Below are positions 45,254-50,699 of a stretch of 64,000 nt of DNA, one piece after another. Source of the DNA: Podarcis vaucheri (lineage: Eukaryota); NCBI GenBank assembly GCA_965113315.1, contig OZ220371.1, one strand, 5' to 3'. Within the stretch, counting starts at the first letter, position 1. Each line of letters starts with the position of its first letter. The notes under the pieces were generated by a model. That model was not told where the DNA came from. It did no database searches and saw only the letters and a list, made by a program, of their open reading frames with translations. The position numbers and the translations under genes are program-made.

Positions 45254-45473
45254 GGGACGCGGGTGGCGCTGTGGTGTAAACCACTGAGCCTTGGGCTTGC
45301 CGATTGGAAGGTCGGCGGTTCGAATCCCTGCGATGGGGTGAGCTCCCATTGTTCGTTCCCAGCTCCTGCCAACCTAGCAGGTCGAGCAAGTAGATAAGTA
45401 GGTACCACTCTGGTGGGAAGGTAAACGTCATTTCTGTGTGCTGCAGTGATCTGTGGGCCTGACAAGATGTCTC

Positions 45474-45941
45474 GAAGCAGTGATCTGTGGGCCTGACAAG
45501 ATGTCTCGGGAGGTGTGCTGTCTCCCCGGGGCTAAGATCCAAGATGTAACTGAACGACTGCAAGGAATCATAAAACCCACTGACGAATACCCCTTCCTCT
45601 TGGTTCATGTGGGAACCAATGACACTGCAAGCAATAGCCTCCAGAAGATCAAAAGAGACTACGAGGCTCTCGGCAGGAAATTGAAGCAACTAAATGCACA
45701 AATTGTCATCTCGTCTGTCCTCCCAGTTGAACAACGTGGCCCAGGGAGAGAGGGGAAAATAGTGGAAGTGAACAGCTGGCTTCGCAAATGGTGTAAACAG
45801 GAACGGTTTGGATTCTTAGATCACGGACTGCAGTTTCTTGAAGATGGACTTCTGGCAAGTGATGGGCTGCACCTCACAACGGTTGGGAGAAATGTTTTTG
45901 CCAAAAATCTCAGAAACCTCATCAGGAGGGCTTTAAACTGA
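45474..45941 (+). CDS. CR1 ORF1, C-terminal SGNH esterase-like domain (5'-truncated, no native start)
   Basis: VCCLPGA, VHVGTND and DGLHL motifs. Ends ...LIRRALN*. Confidence 0.85.
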
Positions 45942-45946
45942 CTAAT

Positions 45947-48868
45947 GTGGGGGAGGGAGACAGTGCTCCTGAAGGTAGGAGTCTATCAATTAATGAAGAT
46001 GATCATCCAAATGTCATAGACCAAATGGAGCAAACAGCACGCGGACCTAGTGGAGGGAGGAAAAAATCCTTAAATAAGAGACACGGGGGAATGATTAATG
46101 GACTTCAATGTCTGTACACTAATGCGCAAAGCATGGGAAATAAACAAGATGAGCTTGAGCTCTTGGTACAGCAAACTAAATATGACATAATAGGCATCAC
46201 TGAAACCTGGTGGGATAAGTCCCACGATTGGAATGTAATAATGGAGGGATACAATCTATTTCAGAGAAACAGACCAGACAAGAAAGGAGGAGGAGTGGCG
46301 TTATATGTCAGGGGTGTGTATACCTGTGAAGAGATCCAAGATTTAGAACCTCAAAGCCAAAGTGAGAGCATTTGGGTCAAAATTCAGGGAGAGAAGAATA
46401 ACAGAGACCTCATTGTGGGAGTTTACTATAGATCCCCAAGCCAAACGGAGGACATAGATGATGCCTTCCTGGAACAGATGGCCAAGCATGCAAAAGGAAG
46501 GGAGATAGTAGTAATGGGGGACTTCAATTACCCGGATATTTGTTGGACGTCAAACTCAGCCAAGAGCATAAGGTCAAACAGATTCCTCACTGGCCTTGCA
46601 GACAACTTCATTGTCCAGAAAGTGGGAGAAGCAACAAGAGGAACAGCCATTTTAGACCTGGTCCTAACCAATGTTGATGACCTGGTTAGTGGGGTAGATG
46701 TGGAAGGATCATTAGGCGCGAGTGATCATGCTCTTCTGAAGTTTACTATACAGCGGAAAGTAGCAGCCAAGCATACTAGGACTCAATTTCTTGACTTTAA
46801 GAAAGCCGACTTCATAAAACTTAGGGAAGTGCTGGGTGAGATCCCATGGACAGCAATACTAAAAGGAAAGGGAGTTCATGATGGCTGGGAGTTTGTTAAG
46901 ACGGAGATAGTAAAAGCACAACGTCAGGCAATACCAATGAGACGAAAACATGGAAGGTGCCTAAAGAAACCAGGGTGGCTATCTAAAGAACTTTTAACTG
47001 AATTAAGATTAAAAAAGGATGTGTACAAAAAATGGAAAAGGGGGGAAACCACCAAAGAGGAATTCAAACAAATAGCCAGCACGTGTAGACACAAAGTCAG
47101 AAAAGCTAAAGCACAGAATGAACTCAGGCTTGCTAGAGAGGTTAAAAGCAACAAAAAAGGCTTTTATGGGTATGTTCGTAGCAAAAGGAAGAACAAAGAA
47201 ACAGTGGGGTCACTCAGAGGAGAAGATGGTGAAATGCAAACAGGGGACACAGAAAGGGCTGAACTCCTCAATGCCTTCTTTGCCTCAGTCTTCTCCGATA
47301 AAGAAGACAATGCCCGACCTGAAGAATTTGAAGCAAATGATTCAGCAAAGGAAACACAGCCCAGAATAACTAAGGAGATAGTACAAGAATATTTGGCTAG
47401 ATTAGATGTATTCAAGTCTCCAGGGCCAGATGAACTGCATCCAAGAGTATTAAAAGAACTGGCAGATGTGATCTCAGAACCACTGGCAGTCATCTTTGAG
47501 AATTCCTGGAGAACAGGCGAAGTCCCGGCAGACTGGAGGAGGGCAAATGTTGTCCCTATTTTCAAAAAGGGGAAAAGAGAGGACCCAAATAATTACCGCC
47601 CAGTCAGTCTGACATCAATAGCAGGGAAGATTCTGGAGCAGATCATTAAGCAAACAGTCTGTGAGCACCTAGAAAGGAATGCTGTGATCACCAATAGTCA
47701 GCATGGATTTCTGAAAAATAAGTCATGTCAGACTAACCTGATCTCGTTTTTTGACAGAATTACAAGCCTGGTAGATGAAGGGAATGCAGTGGATGTAGCC
47801 TACCTTGATTTCAGCAAAGCATTTGACAAGGTGCCCCATGCTATTCTTGTAAAGAAGCTGGTAAAATGCGGTCTTGACTATGCTACCACTCAGTGGATTT
47901 GTAACTGGCTGACTGACCGAACCCAAAGGGTGCTCATCAATGGTTCCTCTTCATCCTGGAGAAGAGTGACTAGTGGGGTGCCACAGGGTTCTGTCTTGGG
48001 CCCGGTCTTATTCAACATCTTTATCAACGACTTGGATGATGGACTCAAGGGCATCCTGATCAAATTTGCAGATGACACCAAACTGGGAGGGGTGGCTAAC
48101 ACCCCAGAGGACAGGATCACACTTCAAAACGACCTTGACAGATTAGAGAACTGGGCAAAAACAAACAAGATGAATTTTAACAGGGAGAAATGTAAAGTAT
48201 TGCACTTGGGCAAAAAAAATGAGAGGCACAAATACAAGATGGGTGACACCTGGCTTGAGAGCAGTACATGTGAAAAGGATCTAGGAGTCTTGGTTGACCA
48301 CAAACTTGACATGAGCCAACAGTGTGACGCGGCAGCTAAAAAAGCCAATGCAATTCTGGGCTGCATCAATAGGAGTATAGCATCTAGATCAAGGGAAGTA
48401 ATAGTGCCACTGTATTCTGCTCTGGTCAGACCACACCTGGAGTACTGTGTCCAGTTCTGGGCACCACAATTCAAGAAGGACACTGACAAACTGGAACGTG
48501 TCCAGAAGAGGGCAACCAAAATGGTCAAAGGCCTGGAAACGATGCCTTATGAGGAACGGCTAAGGGAGCTGGGCATGTTTAGCCTGGAGAAGAGGAGGTT
48601 AAGGGGTGATATGATAGCCATGTTCAAATATATAAAAGGATGTCACATAGAGGAGGGAGAAAGGTTGTTTTCTACTGCTCCAGAGAAGCGGACACGGAGC
48701 AATGGATCCAAACTACAAGAAAGAAGATTCCACCTAAACATTAGGAAGAACTTCCTGACAGTAAGAGCTGTTCGACAGTGGAATTTGCTGCCAAGGAGTG
48801 TGGTGGAGTCTCCTACTTTGGAGGTCTTTAAGCAGAGGCTTGACAACCATATGTCAGGAGTGCTCTGA
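45947..48868 (+). CDS. CR1 ORF2: APE endonuclease plus reverse transcriptase (973 aa from GTG; first in-frame ATG at 46025)
   Basis: APE motifs YTNAQS, GITETW, GDFN, LDLVL, SDH. RT motifs [28 protein letters not shown]. No stops or frameshifts. Confidence 0.97.
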
Positions 48869-50699
48869 TGGTGTTTCCTGCTTGGCAGGGGGTTGGACTC
48901 GATGGCCCTTGTGGTCTCTTCCAACTCTATGATTCTATGATTCTATGATTCTCCAGAAGCGGCTTAGTCATGCTGGCCACATGACCCAGAAAAACTGTCT
49001 GCAGACAAACGCCGGCTCCCTCGGCCAGTAAAGTGAGAAGAGCGCCACAACCCCCGAGTTGTTCGTGACTGGACTAAACTGTCAGGGGTCCTTTACCTTT
49101 TAGGCAAATCCATGGAGTAGAGACGTGTTAGGCTATTTGTCACGAAGACAAGTTGGAACTGTAACATGAGCGTACTTTGTTTACTGTTCTCCTCTCACTC
49201 TAACAACAACAACAACAATTTATTTGTATTCTGCCCTCCCCGGCCAAAGCCGGGCTCACAGTGGCTAACAATAGGTATTCTGTTCCCTACCTCAATCAGT
49301 CAGCAATCTGTAGCTCAACCCTCACTGGGTTGTTTTTTTTGCTTCTACCATTATGTCCTGTCCCCCGATATTTTTTTTATCTCTTCATTTACCTATAGAC
49401 TTGAAGTAACCAATGTGTAGAGTGCTGGACTTGGATCATGGGGAACTGAAATCTATTTCTAGTTTAGCAATGAGCATTCTTGAGTGTTAATCTAAATTCT
49501 CCATCTGTAAAATGGGAAAAATCTCATGGTTTGCATTTCCACTGTTTGTAATTTGAATATATTGGCTAGAATGTCCATATATTAAAAAGTATGCTCTTAC
49601 ATGTTCTACCTACCATGAACAATATTTCACTTGTACAAAAACAGCACAGAGACTTAAATGTACATTTGGTGCCATGTATGAAAAGCCATTTTGGGCATGA
49701 CCAGAGTGATACTTTCCTGTGGAGATGTTTCCAAACTCAAATGCAGAACTGGAATCTGGCACATTGTTTTGAGGGCTGATCTTGCTTCATGCCCTTAATA
49801 ATACCTCATGTTGAGCTGATACTGGTGCAGAATATGAGAGAGAGAGAGTGTTTTTGAAATGAACACTTATAGACCTGTAAAATATTTGATGCAGAAAGCA
49901 GTATTTGGCTGAGTGGGTGATAAATTGAAATAATTTATAAAATTGTTACTGCTTTTAAAAACAAAAAGGAAAATCAATATATCCTTATAAATATAAATAA
50001 CCACAACATTATAATGAAAGGCTGGATAACAGGTGAATGTCGTCCAGTTCAGAACTGGCCCCCTGGCATAGGAGCCCCCTCCCAAACATTTTAAAGTCTC
50101 CAGCATCATACGGTTCTGGTACGCCCCAAGCAGAGAATGACATGCCTGTTAGCCATCTCTTGATTCTCTTATTACTGCTTTGGATGTTTCTCCTATTTTT
50201 TATTTTTTTAAAAAAAATCATTTCATTTTCCCATGGTGCATCCTTTGCAAAAGCAAGCAAGCAAAAGCCCAGGTGGCAGGCAATGCATAAGCCAGACAGA
50301 CTTCTCCTTTAAAAGAACTTGACAATTTTTGGAACGCGTGAGATCCGTCTTCAACACCCACTGGCTGCTGTCCCTGCGTGAAATGCTCCTTCTTTTCCAA
50401 AGAGGCAGGTCCCTCGATGCAAACCTTCGGAACAGAGGGAGTCTCCTCCCTGCACAGTGTAAATGGAGCATGACATCTTCAGCTCTTTCAGGGCTGCAAG
50501 GAGTTAACGCAGACAGTTTCCAAGTGCGGTAGTGTCTCTCGTTCTCTTTCCTTGCCTCCTCCTCCCCACCCTGTTTCTCTCTTCTCTCCCCCCCCCATTT
50601 TCCCCTAGTTTTGGCAGGGGATTAAAGTAGCTCCCCCCTGTGGCAGCAGTGACCCAGAAATGAGTTTGATTCACAGAGTCCTTCCTCCATAACAAGTAA

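Follow-up and report, generated by a model that had tools for sequence, protein, structure and literature searches.

The sequence comparisons presented here indicate that the junction between the two open reading frames (ORFs) of CR1, a long interspersed nuclear element (LINE), probably works as a programmed -1 ribosomal frameshift that gives an ORF1p–ORF2p fusion. Our analysis started from a single CR1 copy in a 64,000-nucleotide (nt) stretch of the lizard Podarcis vaucheri (contig OZ220371.1; the whole stretch is called the window here), in which ORF1 runs into the heptamer U_UUA_AAC with a UGA stop directly behind it and ORF2 lies in the -1 frame. Alignments and protein comparisons reveal how this junction is built and show that its heptamer, the stop next to it, the -1 phase and an open, AUG-independent linker are deeply conserved, whereas the slip itself, its efficiency and its stimulator are inferred. 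In the proposed mechanism, ribosomes translating the esterase ORF1 would reach U_UUA_AAC with UGA as the next codon, and most of them would terminate and release ORF1p. A minority would slip one base back, with the Leu and Asn tRNAs re-pairing on UUU and AAA, and would then read CUG ACU AAU GUG GGG GAG..., cross a variable linker and enter the endonuclease and reverse transcriptase (RT) regions. The product would be an ORF1p–ORF2p fusion made in gag-pol fashion, a proposal already contained in the preliminary description of this DNA and supported by the comparative evidence assembled below, and a low slip efficiency would suit the small amount of ORF2p that LINEs need.

The copy in the window retains the complete junction and the whole of ORF2, and its parts are listed here with the evidence on which each was placed.

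45446 to 48953, plus strand: 5'-truncated CR1 LINE copy with partial ORF1, junction, complete ORF2 and 3' untranslated region (UTR), delimited by Pfam domains, the 3' end and the flanking halves of a short interspersed nuclear element (SINE).
45453 to 45941, plus strand: C-terminal part of ORF1, an SGNH/GDSL esterase domain (PF13472, 6.6e-10), ending ...IRRALN-TGA.
45932 to 45938, plus strand: candidate slippery heptamer U_UUA_AAC for a -1 slip, in ORF1 phase, by direct reading.
45939 to 45941, plus strand: ORF1 stop UGA, directly 3' of the heptamer, by direct reading.
45938 to 45940, plus strand: CUG of the -1 frame, overlapping the ORF1 UGA, by direct reading.
45947 to 45959, plus strand: G-rich tract GTGGGGGAGGGAG, that is GUGGGGGAGGGAG, reading V-G-E-G-D in the -1 frame, by direct reading.
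45966 to 45981, plus strand: weak 5-bp hairpin CUCCU-GAAGGU-AGGAG, as proposed in the preliminary description.
45942 to 46102, plus strand: linker in the -1 frame from the junction to the endonuclease (TNVGEGD...GGMING), an open frame with in-frame ATGs at 46025 and 46091.
46103 to 48868, plus strand: ORF2 proper, with an apurinic-type endonuclease (APE; from LQCLYTNA; Exo_endo_phos, PF03372, 1.4e-16) N-terminal to the reverse transcriptase (RVT_1, PF00078, 1.8e-34) and a stop at 48866-48868.

Direct reading of the lizard DNA confirmed what the preliminary description had stated of the heptamer's phase and the ORF2 frame. ORF1 ends ...ATC AGG AGG GCT TTA AAC TGA, so that T_TTA_AAC stands in exact X_XXY_YYZ phase, and the -1 frame reads GGC TTT AAA CTG ACT AAT GTG GGG GAG GGA GAC... 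and is stop-free from 45863 to 48868. Its first in-frame ATG, at 46025, lies 93 nt past the start of the heptamer and 84 nt 3' of the ORF1 stop. Canonical heptamers in phase occur once in the 162 ORF1 codons, at the last two sense codons, and four times in the 973 codons of ORF2. This is the only CR1 junction in the window.

In tetrapod CR1s the end of ORF1 is sharply fixed. Starting from the ORF1 fragment, a word search and then a profile search collected 128 homologous proteins, named in the databases as SGNH hydrolase-type esterase proteins of reptiles and birds, and 100 of them end exactly in -LN-stop: 89 in ALN-stop, bearing out the statement in the preliminary description that amniote CR1 ORF1s end in RALN-stop, and 11 in another xLN-stop (TLN, ELN, SLN, VLN or DLN, with TLN in Anolis and Varanus). 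The remaining 28 consist of one RALI end, fragments that break off before this point and copies whose stop codon is mutated. Named sources include eleven bird genera from ostrich to passerines, at least eight turtle genera, Alligator, the snake Erythrolamprus, the lizards Podarcis, Zootoca, Salvator, Varanus and Anolis, and the frogs Dendrobates and Ranitomeya. The residue before the Leu varies (A, T, S, V, D or E), and the ten residues further upstream are free too (for example FASRLANLVRRALN, LAHELAGLIERALN and FGDALASFVRKTLN). So tight a C-terminus beside a variable helix points to a constraint that acts on the nucleotides.

Comparison of lizard and bird DNA is consistent with such a constraint. 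A metagenome scan returned 44 CR1 loci, 40 of them from one bird-like project, and the loci of this project were treated as bird DNA on the strength of their closest named CR1 ORF1 relatives, Grus and Limosa proteins at 66-74% identity; a scan of viral contigs and two scans of genome contigs returned no CR1. Around 27 bird copies read ...TGG AGG GCT TTA AAC TGA AGG ACT YGG GGG GTG GGG GG... at the junction. The ORF1 proteins of lizard and bird are only ~50% identical and use matching codons at 41% of the shared residues elsewhere in ORF1, yet all 15 nt of AGG GCT TTA AAC TGA, encoding R-A-L-N-stop, are the same in both, with a naive probability of ~0.01. At other shared Leu positions nearby the codons differ between lizard and bird. 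Counts over three coding sets put the share of TTA among Leu codons at 5-24%, and the elements' own codon usage predicts NNU UUA in 1-6% of cases given x-L-N.

Within birds, the heptamer stands out from its surroundings in the same manner. Per-column counts and alignment printouts were made for 29 copies with a mean pairwise divergence of 18%, the divergent loci L028 and L013 being left out, and among 413 7-mer windows TTTAAAC was the most conserved, ahead of the catalytic motifs; TTTAAACTGA was the most conserved 10-mer. The mismatch rate of the heptamer is 1.0% against 10.8% overall, which a binomial calculation puts at 2e-8, or at 7e-7 against A/T columns, figures that are not true probabilities since the bird copies share kinship. 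The TGA stop is kept in 27 of the 29, and variation in the linker has a flat codon-position periodicity among these dead copies, as neutral decay would give. The two loci left out differ at the junction, with GCTTTAACTTAG and ORF2 at +1 in L028, and with GCTTTAATGATG, 2 nt shorter, and both ORFs in one frame in L013; these frames fit 1-nt and 2-nt deletions inside the heptamer of a -1 arrangement. The expectation that ORF2 would always be found at -1 was borne out wherever a copy is intact, the copies at 0 or +1 being decayed and the two examined fitting losses of 1-2 nt. As a separate observation, L013:2760-3700 is either a decayed copy or a single-ORF variant, and natural in-frame fusions also exist as proteins P0058 and P0165.

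These comparisons bear directly on one alternative, in which there is no recoding signal, the heptamer is a by-product of the -ALN end of ORF1p and inherited codons, and ORF2 is reached by leaky scanning, by an internal ribosome entry site or from downstream AUGs (46025 and 46091 in the lizard). In a single copy the heptamer is by itself weak evidence for a frameshift, because TTTAAAC occurs in the window at its chance frequency (15 observed, 15.2 expected) and the copy is dead and truncated. In the lizard family, moreover, AUG initiation is possible, as the in-frame AUG at 46025 has a good Kozak context and is followed by that at 46091, and the shared ancestry of the families means that identical codons are not independent events. 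A mere by-product leaves it unexplained, however, that 15 junction nucleotides are identical where lizard and bird ORF1 show 59% synonymous change elsewhere, and that the heptamer outranks even catalytic motifs in conservation. It is also at odds with the -1 linker, described next, which is always open from the heptamer onward over lengths of 33-108 codons and in many birds holds no AUG before the catalytic Asn of the endonuclease. We regard this explanation as very unlikely.

The protein sequences of ORF2 carry the same signal in the other frame. A profile search with the ORF2 N-terminus gave 119 further proteins, and in all 29 that start upstream and have an intact junction the junction reads FKL. 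Of the other 90, most start downstream and the few that extend upstream are mutated copies (FQL, SKL or small deletions); no different junction design was found among the 119. The 29 FKL proteins represent ~7 mutually unalignable bird linker types, to which the window adds the lizard's own linker; two of the types carry Grus japonensis names and the rest resemble named bird sequences by their endonuclease starts. Examples are VEG-FKLKDSGGGGQSH, GEAG-FKLKDSGGGVQSG (Grus), FKLGRMGEGDKTR, HRQS-FKLGSKGEGDNIR (Grus), MES-FKLDSKGDGVV, YQG-FKLGLTGEGKG and CREV-FKLDMRGEGDKTR. Since FKL in the -1 frame and LN-stop in frame 0 must be encoded by the same nucleotides, the only possible encoding is U UUA AAY URR, that is, the heptamer with an immediate stop. 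In the CREV-FKL family the two frames together allow only Ser, Cys, Tyr or Phe ahead of the ORF1 Leu, each from a codon whose last base is U, so that the U at position 1 has been kept despite a change of amino acid. FKL thus joins the 15-nt identity set against a 41% codon match and the top-ranked 7-mer in supporting the view that the heptamer is maintained at synonymous positions, as the preliminary description had anticipated.

The linkers themselves bear on how the -1 frame is entered. From FKL to LKCLYTNA they measure 33, 43, 47, 48, 57, 72, 73, 91 or 108 codons (57 in the lizard), all are open in the -1 frame, and 13 of 22 contain no Met, while the others show no conserved position for it. 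For the main bird family, the earliest ATG in frame encodes the M of SMGNK, 246 nt past the heptamer start and four codons after the Asn of YTNA, the residue at which the Pfam match to PF03372 begins and which we take to be the metal-binding Asn of the first endonuclease motif. An AUG-started bird product would therefore lack an essential residue. In Zorro3 the N17A substitution in the endonuclease-coding region left retrotransposition below 5% (PMC1965478), and we infer by analogy that N17 is the counterpart of the YTNA Asn; searches of PDB sequences for an endonuclease template gave no useful match. With no AUG ahead of this Asn, translation would have to enter the -1 frame upstream without an AUG, either by a slip at the heptamer or by a non-AUG start. 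The preliminary description had named dependence of ORF2 on the ATGs at 46025 or 46091 as an observation that would speak against a frameshift, and such dependence is not general, given the 13 of 22 linkers that have no Met before the endonuclease.

A non-AUG start is the core of the main alternative, termination-coupled reinitiation, in which ribosomes would restart without scanning at the CUG that overlaps UGA (C-UGA) or at a nearby downstream codon, ORF2p would be a separate protein, and the conserved junction would be a reinitiation signal. Reinitiation is regarded in the literature as the known LINE strategy (PMC3708506; PMC5009743), an L1-type restart tolerates linkers that often have no AUG, and the stop is fixed directly at the junction, where lizard and bird alike have a CUG that overlaps UGA and an A at -3. 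Neither folding nor RNAalifold, moreover, detected a classical frameshift stimulator. Reinitiation leaves unexplained, on the other hand, why the Leu codon is always the uncommon UUA and why the preceding codon ends in U even where the amino acid changes. FKL occurs in every intact case, the lone SKL being one mutated copy, and the conservation peak falls on TTTAAAC and not on CTGA. At the stop, AAC UGA offers only a near-cognate CUG, with no AUG that overlaps or adjoins it in the manner of UAAUG or AUGA at junctions of the SART1, calicivirus and influenza B type. Known reinitiation signals, the 18S-complementary termination upstream ribosome-binding sites, are located 5' of the stop, while the conserved G-rich tract of CR1 is located 3' of it. 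Taken together these points make reinitiation a possible but rather unlikely account of the junction.

Sequencing reads allowed the RNA and the family as a whole to be considered. Three sequencing runs contain thousands of copies of this CR1 family, a very high copy number, and in all three no variant at or above 5% was found at 45903-45962, heptamer included. This leaves 61 nt around the heptamer free of variants, the longest such gap within 601 nt; given 45 variable sites, a gap of this size would arise by chance in ~1 in 3 cases, and its length alone is not significant. RNA reads cover the junction at ~45x with no indels at 45932-45938 and no splice joints, which argues against correction of the frame at the RNA level. 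Correction by transcriptional slippage or editing at TTTAAA in some transcripts would find its only footing in the short T3A3 runs, and known polymerase slippage requires runs much longer than three; with no indel seen at this depth, we consider such a correction barely credible. In one run (X6) the G run at 45949 is one base shorter in ~6% of the depth, a change that would break the ORF2 frame and that reflects either dead copies or homopolymer error.

Beyond the chance frequency of the heptamer, the lizard AUGs and the C-UGA overlap, further observations weigh against a programmed frameshift. The -LN end could be due in part to the needs of the last helix of the esterase. Two ORF1 proteins (P0059 and P0066, ...RRELN) end in ELN, and a Glu codon gives no U at position 1 of the heptamer, which in this family would read A/G_UUA_AAC. 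G_UUA_AAC is the functional frameshift site of equine arteritis virus, and for this reason we view the ELN family as a test case rather than a refutation. At the DNA level the comparison covers two lineages, lacertid and birds, with turtles, alligator and frogs represented by the ORF1 protein end only. RNA coverage of 45650-46250 in run X23 is modest and comes from both strands, at ~30x and ~15x, which fits read-through or intronic transcription of many copies and not clean sense expression. Downstream of the heptamer, within 50-100 nt, no fold was more stable than shuffled sequences in lizard or bird (z-scores -1.3 to +1.1), RNAalifold on 22 bird copies gave no covariation (-6.95 kcal/mol, covariation term +0.09), and no stable or covarying stem-loop or, in a search that was not exhaustive, pseudoknot was found at 5-9 nt. 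A two-layer G-quadruplex was predicted in one bird subfamily only, and conservation of the G-rich tract within the bird copies is at background level.

Two local stems were considered and rejected. The G-rich tract and the CTCCT/AGGAG hairpin described earlier are both present in the sequence, but the hairpin fails as a stimulator, as it starts 28 nt past the heptamer, folds no better than shuffles (z -0.19 to +1.08) and has no bird counterpart. A GACU...AGUC stem around the G tract has only 4-5 bp, and roughly half of the bird copies disrupt it with no compensatory change.

The sole downstream feature shared by lizard and bird DNA is a G run that starts 10 nt after the heptamer, and a pattern xxxG(E/G/D)G(D/G/K/V) follows FKL in every linker type. 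This tract may act as a linear stimulator, fold into a weak quadruplex or be no more than the conserved opening of a transframe linker; were it conserved as a peptide, this would in itself argue for translation of the -1 frame that sets in at the heptamer. Protein-dependent frameshift stimulators exist in arteriviruses and cardioviruses. A stricter model, in which tetrapod CR1, the prevailing LINE of birds and reptiles, would make ORF2p solely as a fusion through U_UUA_AAC_UGA, stimulated by the G-rich tract ~11 nt downstream and not by an RNA fold, with the tract acting as a linear element bound by a host protein, ORF1p or the ribosome, is in our estimation improbable in this full form. If the tract were bound by ORF1p, the level of ORF1p could feed back on ORF2p synthesis.

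The element in the window is a true CR1, as follows from the Pfam assignments, which place an APE-type endonuclease and RT in ORF2 together with an SGNH-type ORF1, and from the 3' UTR, in which the hairpin TTGGACTCGATGGCCCTTGTGGTCTCTTCCAA is followed by an octamer microsatellite, (ATGATTCT)x3 at 48930-48953, with no poly(A). A 3' hairpin and octamer microsatellite of this kind have been described for CR1 (PMC4316615). What is left of ORF1, the C-terminal ~150 aa, shares 95.6% identity with an ORF1 protein of Podarcis muralis, the 5' truncation at ~45446 lying past the catalytic GDS block. The copy is inserted in a squamate-type SINE derived from a tRNA, the halves of which occupy 45258-45445 and 48954-~49100; ARAGORN called no tRNA at these halves. 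Being 5'-truncated and inside a SINE, the copy is unable to express ORF1 itself; it is dead and merely records the design of its family. Exactly at the truncation point a 29-nt direct repeat (GTGATCTGTGGGCCTGACAAGATGTCTCG) occupies 45446-45474 and 45480-45508, and may be a duplication from joining of the 5' end during insertion. CR1 ORF1 also appears under other names in the databases as an annotation artefact (P0060, P0028, P0067, P0090 and P0119). An ORF1 esterase from a 2.9-kb contig bears the name 'SGNH/GDSL hydrolase [Klebsiella pneumoniae]' and represents vertebrate contamination, and ORF1 tails are found on 'isoforms' of the host genes NUBP1, shisa-4, HAUS7 and beta-parvin in turtle and Varanus annotations.

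The proposed junction has parallels among known recoding systems. Coronaviruses use the identical U_UUA_AAC in X_XXY_YYZ phase between ORF1a and ORF1b, and their polymerase, encoded in the -1 frame, is made as part of a fusion (UUUAAAC: PMC8499926). The coronavirus and arterivirus signal, however, has a stable pseudoknot 5-7 nt downstream, for which no stable or covarying counterpart was found in CR1, and CR1 differs further in having the 0-frame stop directly after the heptamer and in being a nuclear LINE rather than an RNA virus. CR1 also resembles the gag-pol arrangement of retroviruses and long terminal repeat (LTR) elements, in which a heptamer that closes the first ORF fixes the ratio between an accessory or RNA-binding protein encoded upstream and an RT encoded downstream (reviewed in PMC5009743). 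In contrast to these, CR1 is a non-LTR element whose ORF1p is an SGNH esterase and not Gag, with no protease to split the fusion and no structure identified. TRE5-A and TRE3-A of Dictyostelium are non-LTR elements whose ORF2 (APE-RT) is stated, as proposed for CR1, to require a -1 frameshift (PMC5911963), although they belong to another clade and another host and have a different ORF1. By this analogy, the principle of a -1 frameshift already has a precedent among non-LTR elements.

Other non-LTR elements join their ORFs differently. SART1 (UAAUG) and human L1 are, like CR1, bicistronic with the ORF1 stop at the ORF2 start, and L1 has little or no need for AUG (PMC3708506; PMC5009743). CR1 departs from both in having only CUG at the stop, in placing its ORFs in different frames, and in the synonymous conservation of an in-phase heptamer, which reinitiation does not need. 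A fish-like element of the L2/CR1-like ZfL2-1 type (L042:522-5057) shares with CR1 the order of an esterase ORF1, here at 25% identity, and an APE-RT ORF2; its ORF1 stops at 2049-2051 and, 6 nt further on, its ORF2 opens with an ATG at 2058, both ORFs sharing one frame and the junction lacking a heptamer. The frameshift-type junction therefore seems specific to the tetrapod CR1 lineage. Full-text literature searches returned no report of frameshifting in CR1 or in any vertebrate LINE, with older CR1 papers outside their scope and an earlier mention therefore possible. A 2013 paper called the mechanism of ORF2 translation in two-ORF non-LTR elements "not clear" (PMC3708506), the available part of the 2016 recoding review names as sole non-LTR cases the Drosophila telomeric elements HeT-A, whose gag needs a frameshift, and TART (PMC5009743), and a 2026 survey of CR1-group elements mentions neither frameshifting nor ORF overlap (PMC13343379). 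Comparative evidence supports a frameshift-type CR1 junction as a probable variation on recoding systems that are already known.

How the second ORF of a LINE is translated from a bicistronic RNA is a long-standing open question, to which a programmed -1 frameshift at the CR1 junction, if true, would give a concrete and testable answer for a whole clade, with an unexpected esterase–endonuclease–RT fusion predicted as the active enzyme. It would also account for the odd invariance of the ORF1 C-terminus, and a vertebrate nuclear element would join the few cellular users of -1 frameshifting. For genome annotation, an ATG start would no longer be imposed on CR1 ORF2, and -LN-stop with FKL after it would serve as the diagnostic mark of the junction.

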